This document shows, piece by piece, positions 4,992-26,272 of a stretch of DNA of 64,000 bases. Where the stretch lies: the sequence record PQ898399.1; one strand, 5' to 3'. Position 1 is the stretch's first letter. Each line of letters opens with the position of its first letter. The position numbers and the translations under genes were made by a program. Below the pieces are notes generated by a model that made no database searches, had not been told where the DNA came from, and worked only from the letters and a program-made list of their open reading frames with translations.

Positions 4992-5818
4992 TTCAATTTG
5001 TAATTCCGAGTTACAATCGTGTCGGGGCAGTAACTGCCCTGGATATGTTCCCTACTGGTTATGTACCTCATTTAGTAGTTCGTGAGTCTCAGAAAGAAGA
5101 ATATGAGATGCATTACAGCGCGTTAGCTAAAATCGTAACTATTCCAGATGATGTAAATGGCATTGCTGGTACTCGTCGTTTGATTACTGAAATGTATCAA
5201 GGCCAACGAATCTGGATGCTAGACGATGACACTACAATTCATACCACTGAGATTCGTGCTAAAGACGACCGTCGTATTCTTCATGATGTTGGAATGACAT
5301 GGGACGAATTCAATAAACTCACACAGTATGTTGAAGCAGCTATGGACTGTGGATTCTATCACGGCCATGCTCGTTTGCCTATTTTCAAGATTGATTCTAA
5401 GTGGGGTCATTTCCGTGAGAACTCTTATGGATTCACTAACACTTTCTACGATTTAAGCAAACTTTCTGCTGATGACATTGGATATGGTATAGTAGACCTG
5501 TCCGAAGATACATACGCATTCCTTAAACTCATTAATATGGGTTATCCTCATCTGGCGATTTTCAAATATCTCGTCAAATCTGGCAAAGGACAAGCTCCAG
5601 GCGGCGTATCATCTATGCGTAATGCAGCTAAACAAAATCGCGCATTAGAAAAAATTCATGCTGACTTCCCAACTCAAGCTCGTTGGAAATCAGAAGGTGA
5701 CCCAACCAAAACTATGTTTGGCACTGACGAGCCTCTGAAAGTACTTCGTATGTGCGTAGCCAAGAAACAAAAGTCAGATGCTTTCAAAAAATTCAGTGAG
5801 ATTGAGCCTACTTTATGA
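4988..5818 (+). CDS. Beta-glucosyl-HMC-alpha-glucosyltransferase-like glycosyltransferase (GT-A fold)
   Basis: MIQFVIPSYNR start, LDDD DxD motif and SEDT motif resemble the T2/T6-type second glucosyltransferase; overlaps genes 42 and bgt. Confidence 0.82.
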   Translation: MIQFVIPSYNRVGAVTALDMFPTGYVPHLVVRESQKEEYEMHYSALAKIVTIPDDVNGIAGTRRLITEMYQGQRIWMLDDDTTIHTTEIRAKDDRRILHDVGMTWDEFNKLTQYVEAAMDCGFYHGHARLPIFKIDSKWGHFRENSYGFTNTFYDLSKLSADDIGYGIVDLSEDTYAFLKLINMGYPHLAIFKYLVKSGKGQAPGGVSSMRNAAKQNRALEKIHADFPTQARWKSEGDPTKTMFGTDEPLKVLRMCVAKKQKSDAFKKFSEIEPTL

Positions 5819-6891
5819 AAATTGCTATCCTGAACTTAGGTAACAACATCCAGGGGTTTAAAACAACCCCTGCTTCTGAGACAATTTATCTGTCCGAATG
5901 CTTAAAAGATATGGGGCTTGATGTTGACCTCATTTCAATGAAAAATACTCAATATGGCATCGCATTTGATGATGTCCCAGACCCGAATGTATATGACCGA
6001 GTTCTGGTAGTTAATGCTTCTCTGAACTTCTACGGTGGTGAAGAGAACAAGATGAATAAAGCGGCTTATATGTTCTTGAACAAATATAAGTCAAAGATTT
6101 ATTATCTGTTCACTGATATTCGTCTTCCGTGGGAACAAGCGTGGCGCCGAATGTCGAAGAAAAAATGGTCCAGTAAATACACTGAAGAGCAGTTCATTGT
6201 TCGCTCTCCAATTCGTGTAATTTCTCAGGGCCGTGACCTTGAACAAGCTAAACGAATTCACTCTGACCGTTTAGTTGGTGTCTCTAAAGACCGAATGGAA
6301 TTTGTACACTTCGCATTGGACCGGCATAAGATGTATCACAGCGTCTTCAAGATTGCTGCTGATGGCATCAAAATGCGTGACCTGATTTATGGTGGAACAT
6401 TCCGTTCAGGTAATCGCGAAGCTAAGATGGTTGAATATCTGTTTGACACTGGCCTGGATGTTGAGTTCTTTGGTTCAGTAAAGGCAGACCAATTCAAGAA
6501 TCCAGAATTCCCTTGGACTACTCCTCCAGTATTTCCTGGGAAGGTAGATTCTCGTGAAATGGTTCAACGTAACTCAACCGCGTATGCTACTATCGTACTC
6601 GGTGATAAGACTTACGATAATAACCAAATCACTCCTCGTGTATGGGAAGCTCTGGCATCTACTGCAGTGGCATTCTTCGATAGCACATTTGACCCTGACA
6701 TGAATATCATGGAAGGCAATGAGTTCTTCTATGTGAGCAATCGTCAAGAGCTTGTTGACAAAATTAATAAAATCAAAAACGACGAGGACTTTAGAATTGA
6801 AACTCTCGAATATCAGCATAAAATTCTTCAAAAATATCTTGATGAAAAACCAATTTGGCAAGCTGAATTCAAGAAAGCAATTGAAATCTAA
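5815..6891 (+). CDS. bgt: DNA beta-glucosyltransferase
   Basis: MKIAILNLGNNI, KYKSKIYYLFTDIRLP, YGGTFRSGNRE and GDKTYDNNQITPRVWE parallel T4 BGT. Confidence 0.95.
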   Translation: MKIAILNLGNNIQGFKTTPASETIYLSECLKDMGLDVDLISMKNTQYGIAFDDVPDPNVYDRVLVVNASLNFYGGEENKMNKAAYMFLNKYKSKIYYLFTDIRLPWEQAWRRMSKKKWSSKYTEEQFIVRSPIRVISQGRDLEQAKRIHSDRLVGVSKDRMEFVHFALDRHKMYHSVFKIAADGIKMRDLIYGGTFRSGNREAKMVEYLFDTGLDVEFFGSVKADQFKNPEFPWTTPPVFPGKVDSREMVQRNSTAYATIVLGDKTYDNNQITPRVWEALASTAVAFFDSTFDPDMNIMEGNEFFYVSNRQELVDKINKIKNDEDFRIETLEYQHKILQKYLDEKPIWQAEFKKAIEI

Positions 6892-7054
6892 AGAATACAC
6901 CACCGACTCTGTCGGTGGTCATTGTAATGCTTGTTGTTACACACCTTGTCAAAATGATTCACCGCATTGCAATCCGCTTTAAACCGTAGTTGATATAATT
7001 ACTCTATCTTAAACCTGTGAGAAAAATATTATGGAGACTTATGGAAAATAATTA

Positions 7055-8218
7055 ATGTCTGATTTAAAATCTCGTCTGATTAAAGCATCCACTTCTAAAA
7101 TGACCGCATCTCTGGATAAATCCAAATTCTTCAATGAAAAGGATGTAGTTCGTACTAAGATTCCGATGCTTAATATCGCGATTTCAGGTGCATTAGATGG
7201 TGGCATGCAATCAGGTTTAACAATCTTTGCGGGTCCGTCAAAGCACTTCAAGTCAAATATGAGTCTGACTATGGTTTCCGCTTATATGACAAAATATCCG
7301 GATGCTATTTGTCTGTTCTACGACTCAGAATTCGGTATCACTCCAGCATATCTTCGTGCAATGGGTGTTGACCCGGACCGTGTAGTACACACTCCTGTGC
7401 AATCTGTTGAGCAGCTTAAGATTGACATGGTCAACCAGCTGGAAGAAATTGAACGCGGTGAGAAAGTTATCGTATTCATCGACTCCATCGGTAACCTTGC
7501 TTCTAAGAAAGAAACAGAAGATGCTCTGAACGAAAAATCAGTTGCAGATATGACTCGTGCGAAATCACTGAAGTCTCTTTTCCGTATTGTTACACCTTAC
7601 TTCTCTATTAAAAACATTCCATGCGTTGCGGTTAACCACACAATCGAAACAATTGAGATGTTCAGTAAGACTGTGATGACTGGTGGTACAGGTCCAATGT
7701 ACTCAGCAGATACTGTGTTCATCATCGGTAAGCGTCAGATTAAAGATGGTACAGACCTTCAAGGTTATCAGTTTGTTCTGAATGCTGAGAAATCTCGTAC
7801 CGTTAAAGAGAAGAGTAAGTTCTTCATTGATGTTAAATTCGATGGCGGTATTGACCCATACTCTGGTCTGTTGGATATGGCGCTGGAACTTGGTTTTGTA
7901 GTTAAACCTAAAAACGGTTGGTATGCTCGTGAATATCTGGACGTAGATACCGGTGAAATGGTTCGAGAAGAGAAATCATGGCGTGCAAAAGATACTTCAA
8001 GCACCGCATTCTGGGGCCCTCTGTTTAAACATCAGCCATTCCGCGATGCTATTAAAAATCGCTATCAGTTGGGTGCTATTGAAACCAATGCAGTAGTAGA
8101 TGAAGAAGTTGATGCTCTGATTAATTCGAAGACCGAAGAGTTCCATGCTCCGGAAGGCGAAGTAAGAGCAACTCCAGCTTCAATCGAAGATGAACTGGAA
8201 AATTACGATGAAGAATAA
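7055..8218 (+). CDS. uvsX: RecA-like recombinase UvsX
   Basis: MSDLKSRLIKAST start; GPSKHFKS P-loop; DSEFG. Confidence 0.98.
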   Translation: MSDLKSRLIKASTSKMTASLDKSKFFNEKDVVRTKIPMLNIAISGALDGGMQSGLTIFAGPSKHFKSNMSLTMVSAYMTKYPDAICLFYDSEFGITPAYLRAMGVDPDRVVHTPVQSVEQLKIDMVNQLEEIERGEKVIVFIDSIGNLASKKETEDALNEKSVADMTRAKSLKSLFRIVTPYFSIKNIPCVAVNHTIETIEMFSKTVMTGGTGPMYSADTVFIIGKRQIKDGTDLQGYQFVLNAEKSRTVKEKSKFFIDVKFDGGIDPYSGLLDMALELGFVVKPKNGWYAREYLDVDTGEMVREEKSWRAKDTSSTAFWGPLFKHQPFRDAIKNRYQLGAIETNAVVDEEVDALINSKTEEFHAPEGEVRATPASIEDELENYDEE

Positions 8219-8576
8219 TTTCGAGGACTTAGACCTCGATTTGACTGAAGTTGAAGTTCAGGACGAAACCCCCTCTCAGGAGGGGGAATTTGAAAGAACT
8301 GAGCGGATGTTTAAAAAGAGTCTAGAAATAGTCCAAAAGGCTATGGAGAATGTCGTTCAGGAAATCCTGATAACCCTAGAGGATGGCGAGGAACATATCG
8401 TATATGTTACCTCATTACACTTGGATGAAAGCGGCCAGGTGTCACTAGAGTTCTCTACGTTGGACGAATCACGAAAAGCCGACCTTGCACCACATGTTGA
8501 AAAATGTATTAAAATACAAATTCAACAGGCTCACGCCGAAATTATGAGAAAGAAAAAACGTTTCAAACTATTTTAA
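8208..8576 (+). CDS. 40: Head vertex assembly chaperone gp40
   Basis: AMENVVQEILITLEDG..HIVYVT and LAPHVEKCI; located between uvsX and 41. Confidence 0.93.
   Translation: MKNNFEDLDLDLTEVEVQDETPSQEGEFERTERMFKKSLEIVQKAMENVVQEILITLEDGEEHIVYVTSLHLDESGQVSLEFSTLDESRKADLAPHVEKCIKIQIQQAHAEIMRKKKRFKLF
8269..8286 (+). promoter_or_regulatory. GC-rich hairpin inside gene 40
   Basis: CCCCCTC-TCAG-GAGGGGG, a 7-bp stem in AT-rich DNA; T4 has a transcription termination/pause site between uvsX and 41. Confidence 0.45.
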
Positions 8577-8586
8577 TGAGGTTATC

Positions 8587-10029
8587 GTGGTAGAAACAAT
8601 CTTATCTCATTTGCTGTATAATCAGGCCTTCTTCGCGAAGGTTTGGCCTTATATGGGAGATGAGTATTTTGAACATGGCCCAGCCAAAAATGTTTTCAAA
8701 CTGATTCATCAGCACGTTCTTAAATATCAAGCTGTTCCAAGTAAAACTGCATTAGCGGTAGCTTTGGATAATAGTCAGTTAGTTGAAACTGAAGTACAGG
8801 GCGCAAGTGAGTTAATTAATAAGCTTCAAGATACTCCAGAAGATTTAAACTGGCTCGTAGCCGAAACTGAACGTTTTGTTCAAGAATCTGCGATGTACAA
8901 TGCAACATCAAAGATTATTGAAATTCAGACTAACGCCCAACTTCCACCAGAAAAACGAAACAAAAAACTTCCTGATGTAGGTGCAATTCCAGACATCATG
9001 CGAGCTGCTCTGTCAATTTCATTTGATAGTTACATTGGTCATGATTGGATGGAAGACCATGAAGCTCGTTGGTTAGCTTATCAGAATAAAGCTCGTAAGG
9101 TTGCATTCAAACTCAATATTCTGAACCGAATCACAAAAGGCGGTGCAGAGACTGGTACTTTGAACGTATTACTCGCCGGTGTAAACGTTGGTAAGTCATT
9201 AGGTCTGTGTTCTCTTGCTGCTGACTATCTTCAGATGGGTAAGAACGTTCTGTATATCTCCATGGAAATGGCAGAAGAAGTTTGCGCAAAACGTATTGAT
9301 GCTAACTTACTTGATGTATCGCTGGACGATATTGATGATGGTCATATTTCATATGCTGAATACAAAGGTAAGATGGAAAAATGGCGCTCAAAGAATACTC
9401 TTGGTCGTCTGATTATCAAGCAATATCCAACAGGTGGAGCTCATGCAAATACGTTCCGTGCGTTATTGAATGAACTTAAACTGAAGAAGAATTTCGTTCC
9501 TGATGTCATCATTATTGACTATCTGGGTATCTGTGCTTCTTGCCGTATTAAAGTTTATACCGAAAACAGCTACACATTAGTTAAAGCTATTGCAGAAGAA
9601 CTTCGTGCATTGGCTGTTGAATCTGAAACTGTTTTGTGGACAGCAGCTCAGACAACTCGTTCAGGTTGGGACGCTTCTGACGTTTCAATGAGTGATGTTG
9701 CAGAATCCGCGGGTCTACCAGCAACAGCAGACTTTATGCTAGCGGTAATTGAAACTGAAGAACTTGCTCAACAAGGTCAACAGCTCATCAAGCAGATTAA
9801 GTCTCGTTATGGTGATAAGAACATCAACAATAAGTTCTTGATTGGTGTAAGTAAAGGCAATCAGCGTTGGGTAGAAATAGCTCAAGAACATGGTGAACAA
9901 CCAACTTCAGTCAAAGAGACTTCTGGCGCTCAGCAACGAGTAGCAGAAGGAAACAGAATGACTCGTGTTGAACAAAACGCTAGTGCAAGAGCTAAACTCG
10001 ATGCATTGGCTGAAGACCTCAAATTCTAA
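8587..10029 (+). CDS. 41: Replicative DNA helicase gp41
   Basis: GTG start MVETILSHL; AGVNVGKS Walker A; IDYLGIC; ESAGLPATADF. Confidence 0.98.
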   Translation: MVETILSHLLYNQAFFAKVWPYMGDEYFEHGPAKNVFKLIHQHVLKYQAVPSKTALAVALDNSQLVETEVQGASELINKLQDTPEDLNWLVAETERFVQESAMYNATSKIIEIQTNAQLPPEKRNKKLPDVGAIPDIMRAALSISFDSYIGHDWMEDHEARWLAYQNKARKVAFKLNILNRITKGGAETGTLNVLLAGVNVGKSLGLCSLAADYLQMGKNVLYISMEMAEEVCAKRIDANLLDVSLDDIDDGHISYAEYKGKMEKWRSKNTLGRLIIKQYPTGGAHANTFRALLNELKLKKNFVPDVIIIDYLGICASCRIKVYTENSYTLVKAIAEELRALAVESETVLWTAAQTTRSGWDASDVSMSDVAESAGLPATADFMLAVIETEELAQQGQQLIKQIKSRYGDKNINNKFLIGVSKGNQRWVEIAQEHGEQPTSVKETSGAQQRVAEGNRMTRVEQNASARAKLDALAEDLKF

Positions 10030-21689: not shown

Positions 21690-21946
21690 AAGTGTTTGTA
21701 ATGGGTTTGATTGCAGCTATTCTATCTATTGGTATTCTGTCTAGTTGCACAGATGAAACAGGCGCAGAGCGTATTCTTAAAGCTAATGGATTTAGCGAAA
21801 TTGAATTCACAGGTTACGCATGGTTGAGTTGTGATAAAGATGCTTTCTCTACAGGTTTCACTGCTAAAGGTCCTACGGGTATTCCTGTCAAGGGTGCTGT
21901 TTGCTCTGGTATGTTCTTTAAGAACTCTACAATTAGGTTTGAATGA
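21686..21946 (+). CDS. 39.1: gp39.1-like lipoprotein
   Basis: Signal plus LSSC lipobox; CTDETGAERIL..GF..TGY..C...TGF.A.GPTG..V.G.VCSG.FFK.STIRF. Confidence 0.8.
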   Translation: MKVFVMGLIAAILSIGILSSCTDETGAERILKANGFSEIEFTGYAWLSCDKDAFSTGFTAKGPTGIPVKGAVCSGMFFKNSTIRFE

Positions 21947-22155
21947 TGGAAATTAAAAAGAGTTTTGGCAAACATCCGTACCGCAAAGATTTGACTTTTA
22001 TGACTTCAGTCAAAATTAATAAGCGTACAATTTCAAGCTATACTTCAACTCCATTAACTCGCCGACAATTACGTCAATTAAAGCGCAATGCTCGTTCTTT
22101 GGCCGCTTGGCCTCATAATTTTATCCATGAGCATCCTTTCTTTAGTAAAGCTTAA
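21943..22155 (+). CDS. Hypothetical basic protein, 70 aa
   Basis: Overlaps the previous stop. Confidence 0.55.
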   Translation: MMEIKKSFGKHPYRKDLTFMTSVKINKRTISSYTSTPLTRRQLRQLKRNARSLAAWPHNFIHEHPFFSKA

Positions 22156-22162
22156 ATAAATA
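22155..22162 (+). promoter_or_regulatory. Late promoter of the Hoc-SGNH gene
   Basis: AATAAATA, the same variant seen before soc and gene 36. Confidence 0.7.
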
Positions 22163-22186
22163 TCTATAGACTATAAGGAGAACATT

Positions 22187-23722
22187 ATGGCTATAGATAT
22201 TTGGACCACGGTACATCCTATTCCGTGGCGTAATACAAGTTTTCTTTACCTTCCTTGGTGGATTCATAACATCCTTATTAAAGCCAAGGAAGAAGGTAAA
22301 GATTGGCGTGAATACGCTGACCCTCAATATGCCCCTCAAATTGATACTCTCAAACAAGCTTATGTAGATTATGGTGAAGTTAATTTCATTGAATCTAAAA
22401 ATGGTTATCAATACACATTAAGCGAATATACTGTAGATGTTCCAGACCCTCAACCGCCGTTAGGACCAATGCTTCAACCGGTTGCGGTAATGTCAAATCC
22501 GCCTACTCAAAAATTGATTAAAGGCGTTGGATTATCTGGAACTGCTACTATAATTTCTGGTGGTACTGGATATGTGTTCGGAGATATTGTTGATATCCCC
22601 GGAGCAGAAGGAGATGTTCCTGGACAGATTCGAGTAACTGCTGTAGGTGCTGATGGCGCAATTACAACAGCTCAAATTCGCAAACCTGGTGTGTACGCAA
22701 CTGCTCCTACCGGTGAAATTTCAGCGACAGGCGGAACTGGCACAGGTGCTAAATTCACTGTAACAACTAATGCTGGTGTAGCTTCAACGATTTATGCTGG
22801 TGTAACGATTGCTCGTACTGATGCTAAAATCACTTATTGGGGTTCTGATATCAAAGACGCAGTTTCTGGGTTCAGAGGAAATGGTACCGGCAACGGAACT
22901 CAATGCCGAGTTAATTTCAAAACCGATTCAAGCAAAATTGATTTCAAACTCGCTGGCAATAACTCCAAGTATGATCTTTATGTAGATGGACAGCGTATTT
23001 CTGCAACTTCAGTCACTACTGATTCTTCTGGTGCAGTTTACATCTATAGCATCGATTGGAACGGTGTTGAGCAAATGCGTGAATATTCTCTGGTTGGCGT
23101 GAATACTGCCTTTGGTGGAATTTATGTTGATACTGGAAAAACTATCACTGCGATTACTCGTCCGGCTAAGATGATTTGGCAGCTTGGTGACTCTTACACC
23201 TTCGGTACAATGGCAACTCAGGCGTCGTTTAACGACTTCCGTTTCTATTGTGATAAGCTTGGTTTAGTTGGATTAGCTGATGGCATCGGTGGTTCTGGTT
23301 GGACTTCAACAAACTCAACTCAGCCTCAAGCTCGTATCACAGCTAAGCTTGCAACTCTGAGTTTCACTCCAGATATCATTACTTTAGCTTTAGGCTATAA
23401 TGATGCTCCAGCCGGTAGAATTGATTTGCTCAAAACCAACTTCAGAGAGTCAATTGCTCTGATTAAGCAATATCAGCCACAAGCTAAAATTATCGTCTTT
23501 GGACCGGCAACTCCTCTTGGAATGACTGACCAAATCGCAGCGGTTCGTGACGCACTGATTGAACTTACTACTGAGTTAGACTTAGAGTTCGTAGATGTTA
23601 AAGGTTGGGTTACTGCAGAGAACGCAAATCTGTATACCTCAAGCGATAACGTTCATCCGAATGACCAAGGATACTTCTGGCGTGGTTCGCAGTTCACTAA
23701 CGTTCTGCAAGGTAAAGTATAA
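22187..23722 (+). CDS. Hoc capsid-binding-domain-like / SGNH hydrolase fusion protein
   Basis: N-terminus VHPIPWR..WW..EEGKDW..TL..Y.EV..ESKNGY resembles the Hoc C-terminal domain; C-terminal GDS(334-336), GYND(403-406), DNVH(487-490). Confidence 0.8.
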   Translation: MAIDIWTTVHPIPWRNTSFLYLPWWIHNILIKAKEEGKDWREYADPQYAPQIDTLKQAYVDYGEVNFIESKNGYQYTLSEYTVDVPDPQPPLGPMLQPVAVMSNPPTQKLIKGVGLSGTATIISGGTGYVFGDIVDIPGAEGDVPGQIRVTAVGADGAITTAQIRKPGVYATAPTGEISATGGTGTGAKFTVTTNAGVASTIYAGVTIARTDAKITYWGSDIKDAVSGFRGNGTGNGTQCRVNFKTDSSKIDFKLAGNNSKYDLYVDGQRISATSVTTDSSGAVYIYSIDWNGVEQMREYSLVGVNTAFGGIYVDTGKTITAITRPAKMIWQLGDSYTFGTMATQASFNDFRFYCDKLGLVGLADGIGGSGWTSTNSTQPQARITAKLATLSFTPDIITLALGYNDAPAGRIDLLKTNFRESIALIKQYQPQAKIIVFGPATPLGMTDQIAAVRDALIELTTELDLEFVDVKGWVTAENANLYTSSDNVHPNDQGYFWRGSQFTNVLQGKV

Positions 23723-23724
23723 TG

Positions 23725-23744
23725 AAAGGGCCTTCGGGCCCTTT
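23725..23744 (+). terminator. UUCG hairpin terminator
   Basis: AAAGGGCC-TTCG-GGCCCTTT. Confidence 0.88.
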
Positions 23745-23747
23745 GTT

Positions 23748-23777
23748 GTTTACTTTCTCTACAAAGTATAATAAAAT
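23748..23777 (+). promoter_or_regulatory. T4-type early promoter
   Basis: GTTTACT-17 bp-TAAAAT; CTCTACAAAG repeated at 23757 and 23780. Confidence 0.7.
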
Positions 23778-24232: not shown

Positions 24233-26077
24233 ATGATGATTAAGAACGAAATTAAAATTCTGTCAGACCGAGAGCATATCATTAAGCGCTCTGGTATGTA
24301 CATCGGCTCTTCAGCTATGGAAGCTCATGAACGTTTTCTGTTTGGTAAATTCCAAAGTGTAACTTACGTTCCGGGTGTTATCAAGCTGATTGACGAAATC
24401 ATTGATAACTCAGTCGATGAAGCAATTCGTACCAACTTCAAGTTTGCAAATAAAATTTCAGTTGAGCTCAAAGGCAATAAAGTTATCGTAACAGATAATG
24501 GTCGTGGTCTTCCACAAGCTCCAGTAGTTACTCCAGAAGGTGATGAAATTCCTGGACCAGTAGCTGCTTGGACTCGTCCACGTGCCGGTGGTAACTTTGG
24601 CGATGATGCTGAACGCAAAACTGGTGGTATGAATGGTGTCGGTTCTGCACTGACTAATATTTTCTCTGTAACTTTTGCAGGAGCTACTTGTGACGGACAA
24701 AACGAAATCATCGTTCGATGCTCTAATGGGGCTGAGAATATCTCTTGGGATAGTAAGCCAGCAAAGGAAAAAGAGTTCATTCAAACTAAGACCGGAACTC
24801 GAGTATCGTTCATTCCTGACTTCAGCCACTTCGAAAGTTCAGGACTTACAGAAGTAGATGAATCTATTGTTCTGGACCGTCTTCAAACTCTGGCAGTAGT
24901 ATTCCCGGATATTGAATTCAAATTCCAAGGCAAAAAAGTCAATGGCGGATTTAAGAAATTCGCTAAGCAATTCGACGAAGAAGCTATTGTAGCCGATGAA
25001 GATAATTGTTCAATTGCAATTGGTCGTTCTGATGATGGTTTCCGCCAACTGACTTACGTGAATAACATCCATACTTCTAAGGGTGGTTCTCACGTTGATT
25101 TGGTTGTTGACGAATTGTCAAATGAACTAATCCCAATGCTCAAACGCAAGTACAAATTGGAAGTAAACAAAGCTCGTATCAAAGAGTGTTTTACTTTTGT
25201 GATGTTCGTTCGTGATATGAGCAACATGCGATTTGATTCTCAGACTAAAGAACGTCTGACATCTCCGTGGGGTGAAGTTAAAGCTCATTTGAATTTGGAC
25301 TACAAAAAACTTGCTCAACAAGTTATGAAGTCCGAAGCAATTCATATGCCAATTATTGAAGCTATGTTGGCTCGTAAATTGGCGGCAGAAAAAGCTGCTG
25401 AAACTAAAGCTGCAAAAGCTGCTTCAAAAGCTAAGGTTGCTAAACACATTAAGCCAGAACTTTATGGTAATGATAAAGAAGAAACCACTCTGTTCTTAAC
25501 AGAAGGTGATTCTGCGATTGGTTATCTTCTGACTACTCGTGACCGTAAACTTCATGGTGGTTATCCACTTCGTGGTAAGTTCCTGAATACTTGGGGAATG
25601 ACTGCAGCAGAAGCAATGAAGAACAAAGAAGTCTTCGATATCTGTGCAATCACTGGACTGACTATTGGTGAAGATTATGAAAATCTGAACTACAAAAACA
25701 TCGCTATCATGACTGACGCGGATGTTGACGGAACAGGTTCAATCTATCCAAGTCTTTTGGCATTCTTTAGTAATTGGCCTCGTCTGTTTGAAGAAGGTCG
25801 AATTCGCTTCGTCAAAACTCCTGTTATCATTATGAGTAAAGGAGACAAACAGAAGTGGTATTACACTGCCGCTGAATATGAAGCTGAAAAAGATGAACTT
25901 GCTGGTTGGAAACTTCGTTACATCAAAGGGCTCGGTTCTTTGGAAGAAGACGAATATGAACGAGTAATCCAAGAACCTCATTATGATGTAGTTTCTCTTC
26001 CGGAAAACTGGAAAGAACTCTTCGAGATGGTTATGGGTTCTGATGCTGCTCCACGCAAGGTCTGGATGAGCGAATAA
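24233..26077 (+). CDS. 39: Type II topoisomerase large subunit, gp39 and gp60 in one ORF
   Basis: LSDREHIIKRSGMYIGS, EIIDNSVDE, GGMNGVG GHKL motifs, TEGDSA TOPRIM, DADVDG, YIKGLGSL. Confidence 0.97.
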   Translation: MMIKNEIKILSDREHIIKRSGMYIGSSAMEAHERFLFGKFQSVTYVPGVIKLIDEIIDNSVDEAIRTNFKFANKISVELKGNKVIVTDNGRGLPQAPVVTPEGDEIPGPVAAWTRPRAGGNFGDDAERKTGGMNGVGSALTNIFSVTFAGATCDGQNEIIVRCSNGAENISWDSKPAKEKEFIQTKTGTRVSFIPDFSHFESSGLTEVDESIVLDRLQTLAVVFPDIEFKFQGKKVNGGFKKFAKQFDEEAIVADEDNCSIAIGRSDDGFRQLTYVNNIHTSKGGSHVDLVVDELSNELIPMLKRKYKLEVNKARIKECFTFVMFVRDMSNMRFDSQTKERLTSPWGEVKAHLNLDYKKLAQQVMKSEAIHMPIIEAMLARKLAAEKAAETKAAKAASKAKVAKHIKPELYGNDKEETTLFLTEGDSAIGYLLTTRDRKLHGGYPLRGKFLNTWGMTAAEAMKNKEVFDICAITGLTIGEDYENLNYKNIAIMTDADVDGTGSIYPSLLAFFSNWPRLFEEGRIRFVKTPVIIMSKGDKQKWYYTAAEYEAEKDELAGWKLRYIKGLGSLEEDEYERVIQEPHYDVVSLPENWKELFEMVMGSDAAPRKVWMSE

Positions 26078-26080
26078 ATA
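26073..26080 (+). promoter_or_regulatory. Late promoter overlapping the gene 39 stop
   Basis: AATAAATA followed by hairpin TATCGGGC-GTCTT-GCCCGATA and SD AAGGAG. Confidence 0.65.
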
Positions 26081-26116: not shown

Positions 26117-26272
26117 ATGTCACAGATTTGGGTAACATTAGTAGATGGAAGTTACGGCTACATGTGGGGAGATGCTCTGCCGCTCCCAGGTGATACTGTC
26201 ACTATCCGTGTAAGACATACCAACGGCTCTTATACTAAAGTCACAGGCATTGTTTCTCGTGCTTCGTGGTAA
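26117..26272 (+). CDS. 51-aa late protein (not in ORF track)
   Basis: MSQIWVTLVDGSYGYMWGDALPLPGDTVTIRVRHTNGSYTKVTGIVSRASW; SD AAGGAG, late promoter and terminator. Confidence 0.75.
   Translation: MSQIWVTLVDGSYGYMWGDALPLPGDTVTIRVRHTNGSYTKVTGIVSRASW

Follow-up and report, generated by a model that had tools for sequence, protein, structure and literature searches.

A putative capsid-displayed esterase with an N-terminal Hoc anchor in Enterobacter phage SonariX

The gene and its genomic context

Sequence record PQ898399 (PQ898399.1) is that of Enterobacter phage SonariX, a CC31/PG7-like relative of phage T4. The window, which is the whole stretch of 64,000 nucleotides (nt) analyzed in this study, equals the first 64 kb of this record at 100% identity, with the same coordinates, and contains an open reading frame (ORF) at positions 22187–23722 of the plus strand, which starts with ATG and encodes a polypeptide of 511 amino acid residues (55.1 kDa, pI 5.0). 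This coding sequence, referred to here as the reverse-Hoc esterase gene, matched phrog_9703 ("head decoration") over its full length with an E value of 1.4e-267. Its product possesses an N-terminal domain homologous to the capsid-binding domain of T4 Hoc, followed by a Pro-rich linker, a small all-beta domain, a beta-sandwich and an SGNH hydrolase domain, and it is probably an esterase that is displayed on the capsid. The ORF and every motif named in a first-pass annotation, which was made from the sequence alone, were found at the positions given there.

The closest classified relatives of SonariX belong to the genus Karamvirus (Straboviridae, Tevenvirinae). The gene is held by 30 phage records, in which nucleotide identities range from 85 to 100% and the GenBank labels vary from record to record, including "hypothetical protein", "hoc", "lipase" and "capsid and scaffold". 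As the first-pass annotation had noted, the gene is located in an early region: its surroundings are a plus-strand block of early/middle genes that includes dda, dexA, a homolog of gene 39.1, gene 39 (topoisomerase) and rIIA.

The N-terminal Hoc domain

Residues 1–85 (22187–22441, plus strand) were assigned to the Hoc capsid-binding domain by phmmer, by the secondary structure of an AlphaFold2 model and by a Foldseek match to 8t1x_X. In a phmmer search against all PDB sequences, residues 9–75 aligned with residues 294–361 of T4 Hoc with an E value of 2.4e-9, and the resemblance to the C-terminal domain of Hoc that was noticed in the first-pass annotation is thus real and far above what chance would give. 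The N-terminal domain also matched three Hoc-like families of PHROGs, phrog_1149, phrog_14282 and phrog_11091, with E values of 4e-19 to 5e-39. The motifs VHPIPWRNTSF, EEGKDW and ESKNG are found at residues 9–19, 35–40 and 69–73, respectively, and ESKNG does occupy the position of the capsid-binding ESRNG loop of T4 Hoc, to which it had been assigned.

When the model of the whole protein was searched with Foldseek, the results were swamped by matches to SGNH proteins and the Hoc domain was hidden. The N-terminal domain was therefore modeled separately with AlphaFold2, using residues 1–95 and an anchor alignment of 52 sequences. The model contained strands at residues 9–12, 17–22, 64–69 and 75–77 and helices at residues 24–36 and 46–62, which is the arrangement of a four-stranded sheet and a helical bundle found in 8t1x. 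Its sole significant match in the PDB was 8t1x_X, which is the C-terminal domain of T4 Hoc on gp23* (E value of 2.8e-6, template modeling (TM) score of 0.65, 81 columns). The E value of the next match was 0.47. Whether the N-terminus models as a Hoc capsid-binding domain had been set beforehand as a check of the display prediction, and this was the fold obtained.

The residues of T4 Hoc that contact the capsid were taken from Fokine et al. (2023; PMC10385173) and mapped through the phmmer alignment. Nine contact or loop residues are identical in the SonariX protein: His295, Arg300, Trp309, Trp310 and Glu355 of T4 Hoc are kept as H10, R15, W24, W25 and E69, and Ser356, Asn358, Gly359 and Tyr360 as S70, N72, G73 and Y74. 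Conservative replacements are found at three others, which are Tyr304 (F19), Trp306 (Y21) and Arg357 (K71). Moreover, conservation within the anchor is highest at H10, P11, R15, W25, E69, S70, N72 and G73, which are the positions that contact the capsid, and the contact residues are retained in orthologs down to 52% identity. On the capsid side, the Hoc docking segment of T4 gp23 (Gly326–Arg344) and the corresponding segment of the close relative PG7 are identical at 18 of 19 positions, with D336, P337 and R344 kept; PG7 gp23 was used for this comparison, and the SonariX gp23 gene lies outside the window.

The canonical architecture of Hoc was not found. The anchor is at residues 1–85 instead of the C-terminus, and neither the Pfam scan nor the model contained an Ig-like domain (Ig, immunoglobulin). 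As judged from its sequence, the 511-residue protein is thus a member of the Hoc anchor-domain family that stands outside the canonical Hoc architecture. Such a domain might no longer bind capsids and might instead serve folding, oligomerization or the binding of a tail component, in which case the protein would be a tail/baseplate or non-structural enzyme. The reversal of the domain order relative to every experimentally studied Hoc, the changes at four contact residues and the resemblance of a small domain of the protein to a surface domain of the tail sheath, both described below, would all be compatible with such an exaptation. However, it is at the capsid-contacting positions that the anchor is most conserved, this conservation extends to the docking site on gp23, and a fusion with Soc in other phages puts the same enzyme on a second, unrelated capsid-surface protein. 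An exapted N-terminal domain is therefore highly improbable.

The linker, the spacer domain and the esterase

The full-length protein was modeled with AlphaFold2 from an alignment of 54 sequences, with a mean predicted local distance difference test (pLDDT) score of 87.8. The Pro-rich linker, the GGTG-rich beta domain and the four SGNH blocks that the first-pass annotation had listed were all identified. The linker comprises residues 86–106 (22442–22504, plus strand), beginning with PDPQPP at residue 86, and is of low confidence, with pLDDT falling to ~55 at residues 81–90. Homology to those relatives of the C-terminal portion that lack the anchor begins at about residue 98 (PVAVMSNPPT). The small all-beta GGTGY domain that follows (phrog_32129; residues 107–196; 22505–22774, plus strand) was modeled with pLDDT of 96–98. 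Domain I of the tail-sheath protein gp18 (PF22639) matched 9 of the 54 family members with a best E value of 1.3e-5, and it matched the SonariX protein with an E value of 0.011. Comparison of the GGTGY domain with residues 102–168 of PG7 gp18 gave a BLASTP E value of 0.054. Tentatively, the GGTGY domain might be related to gp18 domain I, and it may be a surface-exposed module that is common to sheath and decoration proteins.

Residues 197–325 (22775–23161, plus strand) constitute a beta-sandwich, whose strands lie between residues 206 and 314 of the AlphaFold2 model and which was found by Foldseek at the position of the N-terminal jelly roll of CE2 esterases. Residues 326–511 (23162–23719, plus strand) constitute an SGNH/GDSL hydrolase domain, which matched PF13472 of Pfam with 67 bits, compared with a curated cut-off of 32.9 bits (E value of 4e-18). 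Blocks I, II, III and V of this domain contain GDS (residues 334–336), GIGGSG (366–371), GYND (403–406) and DNVH (487–490), respectively, and the catalytic set consists of Ser336 of block I, Gly371 of block II, Asn405 of block III and Asp487/His490 of block V. G334, D335, S336, G371, N405, D487 and H490 were invariant across the 54 aligned homologs, suggesting that the family is under selection for catalysis.

In a Foldseek search of the PDB, residues ~200–511 matched two-domain enzymes as one unit. These enzymes were SsfX3 (3skv) and the CE2 enzymes CtCE2, CjCE2, Est2A and 4xvh, and their matches had E values of 3e-16 to 1e-14, TMt of 0.53–0.70, 336–398 columns and 12–18% identity. The flavodoxin-like fold of the SGNH superfamily was thereby recovered, with matches to more than 100 structures of this superfamily that had E values of 1e-3 or lower. 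Single-domain GDSL esterases and thioesterases ranked lower, with TesA/lysophospholipase L1 at an E value of ~1e-6, and the match to the peptidoglycan O-acetylesterases Ape1 was much poorer (E value of ~1e-10, TM score of 0.25–0.35). Among predicted viral structures, the best matches were a tail-fiber protein of a Clavibacter phage and several SGNH proteins, including that of Shigella phage Sf12. The two-domain architecture in which a beta-sandwich sits on an SGNH domain, as in 2wab, 2wao, 2waa, 4xvh, 4dev and 3u37, is hence present, and the protein resembles CE2 enzymes in architecture without being a member of the CE2 sequence family. From its fold and family, we infer that the enzyme is a carbohydrate O-acyl esterase, most likely an O-acetyl esterase. 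The Pfam scan of the 511-residue protein revealed neither a DUF1737 nor a SASA domain, and both a signal peptide and a membrane segment are absent from the protein, whose N-terminus is the Hoc domain.

Two other roles of the enzyme have to be weighed here. Firstly, the beta-sandwich and SGNH domains could chiefly bind carbohydrates, replacing the Ig-like domains of Hoc and keeping the virion attached to glycans of the host or the mucosa, and catalysis would be of secondary importance. The title of 2w9x, a CE2 structure among the top structural matches, refers to an active site whose functions diverge between catalysis and non-catalytic binding, and the passengers on the nearest relatives of the anchor are Ig-like domains of a purely binding type. 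The invariance of S336, G371, N405, D487 and H490 in 54 of 54 homologs, however, would be unexpected for a pure binding role, and an adhesin is quite unlikely. Secondly, the enzyme could act on the cell envelope during entry or lysis, as an Ape1-like peptidoglycan O-acetylesterase or as an outer-membrane lipase/lysophospholipase. In addition to the matches to Ape1 and TesA/lysophospholipase L1, the label "lipase" in GenBank and the position of related enzymes directly after the lysis genes in lambdoid prophages point in this direction. However, the fit to Ape1 is poor compared with that to CE2 enzymes, the protein begins with a Hoc domain and carries no export or membrane signal, and a capsid-tethered enzyme would be distant from the peptidoglycan during infection. 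Moreover, the peptidoglycan of Enterobacter is not known to be O-acetylated. A function in entry or lysis is therefore very unlikely.

Homologs of the beta-sandwich and SGNH domains with 30–33% identity were also found in the Shigella phages Sd1 (~48 kb; NC_047847, 32516–33478) and Sf12 (BFVD A0A291AXQ0). The Sf12 homolog consists of 430 amino acid residues, and the Sd1 copy is labeled "head decoration", apparently via PHROG propagation.

Expression signals

The octamer AATAAATA, which resembles T4-type late promoters, is located at 22155–22162 (plus strand) and agrees with TATAAATA at seven of the eight positions. It overlaps the stop codon of an upstream ORF of 70 residues and ends 24 nt before the ATG of the esterase gene. 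The Shine-Dalgarno sequence AAGGAG, read from the sequence, is at 22175–22180 (plus strand), 6 nt before the ATG. Downstream of the gene, an intrinsic-terminator-like element at 23725–23754 (plus strand) consists of the GC-rich hairpin AAAGGGCCTTCGGGCCCTTT at 23725–23744 followed by the T-rich tail GTTGTTTACT. Hence the gene does possess the Shine-Dalgarno sequence and the terminator of its own that had been ascribed to it.

The first-pass annotation had also described the octamer as a late promoter of the kind that precedes soc and gene 36. Both of these genes are preceded by AATAAATA, with 28 nt between its end and soc and 24 nt between its end and gene 36, and gene 34 is preceded by TATAAATA at a distance of 30 nt. 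Among the 102 start codons annotated, only 5 have [T/A]ATAAATA within 45 nt upstream, and only 4 have it ending 24–30 nt upstream, which are those of soc, gene 36, gene 34 and the esterase gene. The number expected by chance for this placement is 0.11–0.52 (P of 7e-6 to 2e-3). Moreover, AATAAATA is invariant in Pet-CM3-4, COW86c and CC31 despite the diverged sequence immediately upstream, and it is also found ahead of the Cronobacter phage S13 ortholog, which is 52% identical, and ahead of the Entb_45 Soc-esterase gene. Enrichment of the motif was dropped as evidence for late promoters, as 3 copies of TATAAATA (3.45 expected) and 6 copies of AATAAATA (5.0 expected) were found in the window. 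Thus, the presence of the motif, its sharing with soc and gene 36 and its conservation all stand, whereas its count in the window does not speak for a promoter. Late transcription of the esterase gene is predicted, with good support, from the position and conservation of the octamer.

A further copy of AATAAATA is found at 26073–26080 (plus strand), where it shares bases with the stop codon of gene 39 and is separated by 36 nt from a downstream ORF of 51 residues (26117–26272). It could be the late promoter of a small gene inside the early region. The ORF of 70 residues mentioned above (21943–22155, plus strand) separates the gene 39.1 homolog from the esterase gene. No ORF is annotated at this position in Pet-CM3-4, CC31 and COW86c, in which the gene 39.1 homolog ends ~30 nt before the esterase gene, and similarity among the relatives picks up again at the AAATAAATA motif. 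This pattern would fit an insertion that ends just upstream of the conserved promoter motif.

Origin of the anchor and of the esterase cassette

Residues 1–95 were scanned against 1.84 billion representative proteins. Among the 63 proteins found with a Hoc domain, the domain was N-terminal in only about seven, comprising six full-length proteins of 121–246 amino acid residues and a fragment of 49 residues. These were the closest relatives of the SonariX anchor, with identities of 40–63%. Four of the six full-length proteins carry Ig-like (Big_2/Ig_3) passengers, and the other two had no Pfam match. The existence of N-anchored Hoc proteins with Ig-like passengers suggests that this reverse-Hoc lineage predates the addition of the esterase.

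The remainder of the protein (residues ~98–511), which we refer to as the esterase cassette, was found behind at least 12 unrelated N-termini, with identities of 35–60%. Most of the cassette relatives possess a mere 37-residue N-terminal peptide and are encoded in enterobacterial chromosomes. One of them, from Kosakonia, is part of the late operon of a lambdoid prophage, in which it is located between the lysis genes and terminase and beside a separate PF08400 ORF. In a lambdoid phage contig, the cassette is fused directly to the PF08400 "prophage tail fibre N-terminal" domain. Further N-termini are collagen-like sequences, tail-fiber repeats, a Tat signal peptide and Soc (PF16855). Virion-attachment modules of other phages therefore carry the cassette as well. 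In SonariX, its GC content is 0.43 and its GC content at third codon positions (GC3) is 0.30, close to the GC3 of soc (0.29). These phage-like values led us to reject a recent horizontal transfer of the cassette, and the fully phage-like codon composition suggests that the gene has long been maintained.

In the lambdoid contigs (7187–9353; 5747–7336), the cassette either follows a separate PF08400 ORF of 166 residues and an ORF of 103 residues or is fused to PF08400. Its position in the lambdoid late operon is analogous to the moron/esterase region of Shiga toxin (Stx) phages. A distant relative of metagenomic origin (447 amino acid residues) opens with the twin-arginine signal peptide MRRRDFLKGAG, which suggests that the cassette family includes cellular secreted or periplasmic esterases, maybe its ultimate source.

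The Soc-esterase fusion, with 504 amino acid residues, was found in the five Enterobacter phages Entb_45, CIP9, IME523, Q7622 and ZX14. In this protein, an N-terminal Soc domain (PF16855) is joined to the esterase cassette through a Pro-rich linker. In Entb_45, which is classified as a Kanagawavirus, the fusion gene (ON630910, 13902–15416) is located directly downstream of a stand-alone soc (81 residues; PF16855 E value of 1.6e-19), in the vicinity of gene 56 (dCTPase). The fusion gene has the same TAAATAAATAT motif upstream and terminators on both sides, and the hairpin after the gene is analogous to that of SonariX. The GenBank labels of the fusion are "hoc", "lipase" or "virion structural protein", but never Soc, and a literature search for a paper on it yielded only irrelevant plant and lipase papers, which does not prove that none exists.

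In a maximum-likelihood tree of the cassettes alone, which was midpoint-rooted and contained only two Soc rows, the Hoc- and Soc-fused versions formed one clade (100/99), with the Soc pair nested inside it (96/96). This topology led us to reject the alternative in which Hoc and Soc captured the cassette independently. In the simplest history, a reverse Hoc would have acquired the cassette once, and the cassette would later have been transferred to a duplicated Soc. Nesting of the Soc fusions within the Hoc fusions argues for a swap of anchors and for selection for capsid display. We give about an even chance to the broader view that the T4-like phages of Enterobacter, Cronobacter and Edwardsiella practice a natural capsid display of enzymes, in which a single cassette was captured once and later placed onto a duplicated Soc, with selection acting on an enzyme at the head surface whatever its site or copy number.

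The same comparison bears on whether the enzyme stays on the head. The SonariX protein might be made late and be mainly soluble, or be cut at the Pro-rich linker, so that few capsid sites would be occupied and the enzyme would deacylate neighboring cells, debris and matrix after lysis, with the Hoc domain as a transient tether or a vestige. In gp84 of phage phi24B, an N-anchored capsid esterase, the catalytic part is indeed lost from the anchor by proteolysis. The linker of the SonariX protein is long and of low confidence, canonical Hoc would contend for the same sites, and most cassette relatives have just the 37-residue peptide. However, contact residues of the anchor are kept even in the orthologs with 52% identity, the swap to Soc speaks for selection on attachment as such, and neither a cleavage motif nor a protease domain was identified. 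A released enzyme is therefore unlikely.

Canonical Hoc of SonariX and PG7

As the first-pass annotation had supposed, a canonical Hoc is encoded outside the window. It is intact, consists of 373 amino acid residues and is located at 85830–86951 of the record. Its capsid-binding domain is 35% identical to the N-terminal anchor of the esterase protein (E value of 4e-12), and competition between the two proteins for the hexamer centers is plausible. In PG7, the canonical hoc locus (KJ101592, 114847–115969) is annotated as split into ORFs of 146 and 233 residues, and the second Hoc of PG7 has been quoted as having 233 residues (Fokine et al., 2023; PMC10385173). This locus has a length of 1123 nt in PG7 versus 1122 nt in SonariX, where it is annotated as one ORF, and in at least nine other relatives. 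A split Hoc was thus rejected as a genus-wide feature, and the 233-residue Hoc is probably a frameshift or a sequencing artifact of the PG7 record.

The SonariX deposit itself has a length of 248,734 bp and is described as "partial genome"; all relatives are of ~165–175 kb. The genome of vB_Ecl_id4496 (172,413 bp) contains a copy of the esterase gene that is 100% identical to that of SonariX. The SonariX record may contain redundant or concatenated sequence.

Capsid display of the esterase

Taken together, these results favor the interpretation that the 511-residue protein is a capsid-displayed esterase, anchored by a Hoc domain in reverse order, which is probable though far from certain. Within the limits of sequence analysis, the display interpretation of the first-pass annotation is supported. 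The protein would be a "reverse Hoc", i.e., a Hoc paralog whose capsid-binding domain is N-terminal and whose Ig-like passengers were swapped for a three-domain esterase cassette. Within the cassette, a spacer resembling sheath domain I and a CE2-like beta-sandwich would precede an SGNH hydrolase in which the Ser-Asp-His triad and the oxyanion residues are intact. Late transcription of the gene would be driven by a T4-type late promoter of its own. After head expansion, the N-terminal domain would dock at the centers of gp23* hexamers, of which the T4 head offers 155, via its conserved His/Arg/Trp-Trp/ES(K)NG surface, presumably in competition with the canonical 373-residue Hoc. The Pro-rich linker and the spacer domain would keep the enzyme off the shell, and the enzyme would strip O-acyl groups, most likely O-acetyl groups, from polysaccharide. 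Candidate substrates are the host O-antigen, capsule, enterobacterial common antigen (ECA), colanic acid and biofilm matrix. The deacylation may help the virion to move through or hold onto the glycan layer, or may free it from debris. The strongest argument for display is comparative: one enzyme appears on two unrelated capsid-surface anchors, each of them an extra paralog beside a canonical decoration gene.

Several observations weigh against this interpretation. The model of the N-terminal domain is of moderate confidence only, with pLDDT of 72.7 and residues 1–8 disordered. Four contact positions of T4 Hoc are changed (Tyr293 to T8, His299 to W14, Asp313 to N28 and Gln354 to I68), and the salt bridge between Arg357 and Asp313 of T4 Hoc is replaced by Lys71/Asn28. 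With the reversed order, the chain exits the anchor after beta-strand 4, which is within the capsid-facing sheet. The match to CE2_N (PF17996; E value of 0.07) scored 13.6 bits and was hence below the cut-off of 27.9 bits. The best structural match, SsfX3, is an acyltransferase, and lower ranks include thioesterases and lipases. The promoter octamer is only a 7/8 match and occurs in the window about as often as expected by chance. Finally, in the one mass spectrometry study of Karamvirus virions that was found, gel bands of ECLFM1 were assigned to only five named proteins, with the rest being hypothetical, and the esterase protein is not reported there. The literature search found no usable virion proteomics for Pet-CM3-4, Entb_43/45 or KP15/KP27.

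Previous descriptions and implications

The Hoc-GDSL architecture and the idea of display are already in the literature and in sequence records. The RefSeq note of CC31 describes the N-terminal part of the protein as Hoc-like and its C-terminal part as like a G-D-S-L lipolytic enzyme, and the annotation of Pet-CM3-4 reads "Head outer capsid protein (c-part SGNH hydrolase)". Fokine et al. (2023; PMC10385173) presented the 511-residue protein of PG7, which has a capsid-binding domain at the N-terminus and a GDSL domain at the C-terminus, as an example of functionalization of the capsid surface. In a paper of 2025, the Entb_43 ortholog was listed among possible biofilm-degrading enzymes, with its probable binding to the capsid unmentioned. 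No experimental test of display, virion proteomics or enzymology of this protein was found in the literature. As far as searched, the support for the anchor at the level of residues and structure, the CE2-like assignment, the promoter evidence, the reverse-Hoc source, the mobile cassette with its swap to Soc and the correction of PG7 Hoc are new.

The natural role of dispensable decoration proteins such as Hoc is debated, mostly in terms of passive adhesion by Ig-like domains. A displayed enzyme would be a different answer, i.e., a catalytically active head. If so, the capsid, besides the tail, would be a catalytic organelle that remodels host and environmental glycans, and the Hoc/Soc pair (155 versus 870 sites in T4) would be a comparative system for gauging the contribution of a capsid enzyme to infection. 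The Soc-fused sister gene represents an independent natural replicate, which strengthens the case for experiments. The system is also tractable: the GenBank record of CC31 lists E. coli as its host, and T4 heads without Hoc and Soc are standard reagents for binding in vitro. Annotation and the choice of Enterobacter phages as therapy candidates are affected too, given that the gene carries mixed labels and that a possible anti-biofilm enzyme is probably capsid-bound.

Comparison with known systems

The closest known systems are the 511-residue protein of PG7 and p007 of CC31, which are encoded by the same gene, with full-length nucleotide identities of 96.7 and 91.7%, respectively, and are found beside gene 39 with the same architecture. 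Earlier descriptions of these two proteins are one-sentence bioinformatic remarks, from which residue-level, structural, promoter and evolutionary analyses are absent. Canonical T4 Hoc, with three Ig-like domains and a C-terminal capsid-binding domain (8t1x, 5vf3), has a homologous anchor with the same fold and shares most of the contacts. The two systems are also alike in the conserved docking site on gp23, in the acidity of the protein (pI 5.0), in the gene looking non-essential and in the late-promoter-like motif. Different from T4 Hoc, however, the SonariX protein has the reversed order, has no Ig-like domains, carries an enzyme as passenger and is encoded in the gene 39 region instead of the inh-hoc locus.

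Nearest in the anchor itself, at 53–63% identity, are the reverse Hocs with Ig-like passengers (phrog_14282 and phrog_11091) of Citrobacter phage Miller, Klebsiella phage KP15 and Enterobacter phage Taquito. Reverse Hocs of this type (165–246 amino acid residues) carry one or two Big_2/Ig_3 domains, but not the esterase cassette. Conversely, the Soc-esterase fusion of Entb_45, CIP9, IME523, Q7622 and ZX14 shares with the SonariX protein the cassette (~52% identity), a Pro-rich linker, AATAAATA and the bracketing by terminators, but it is anchored by Soc, whereas the SonariX protein is anchored by Hoc. In T4, Soc forms trimers between the capsomers, with 870 copies per head.

The CE2 esterases (2wab/2wao, 2waa/2w9x and 3u37/4dev) and SsfX3 (3skv) share the combination of a beta-sandwich and an SGNH domain with the SonariX protein at only 12–18% identity. 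CE2 enzymes are described as possessing Ser-His dyads. Different from these, the family of the SonariX protein keeps an invariant Asp487 in block V.

Virion-borne SGNH enzymes that act on host polysaccharide are also known from tail fibers, such as the O-antigen deacetylases gp63.1 of E. coli phage G7C and gp66 of Pectobacterium phage Possum; for Possum, O-deacetylation was shown by nuclear magnetic resonance (PMC9569702). These enzymes sit on the adsorption apparatus and take part in receptor recognition, whereas the mount of the SonariX protein would be the capsid, and neither of them was among the top 50 structural matches of Foldseek in the PDB. In phi24B gp84, finally, a NanS-p esterase has been shown experimentally to decorate the capsid, with an N-terminal DUF1737 domain at the hexon centers (bioRxiv 10.64898/2026.04.10.717836). 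It works in a similar way, as a small N-terminal capsid anchor precedes a carbohydrate esterase. The anchor (DUF1737, which binds as a hexamer) and the esterase (SASA/NanS) of gp84 are, however, unrelated to those of the SonariX protein, phi24B is a podovirus with a T=9 capsid, and its esterase is processed proteolytically. The relationship between phi24B gp84 and the SonariX protein is thus best regarded as an analogy of design only.

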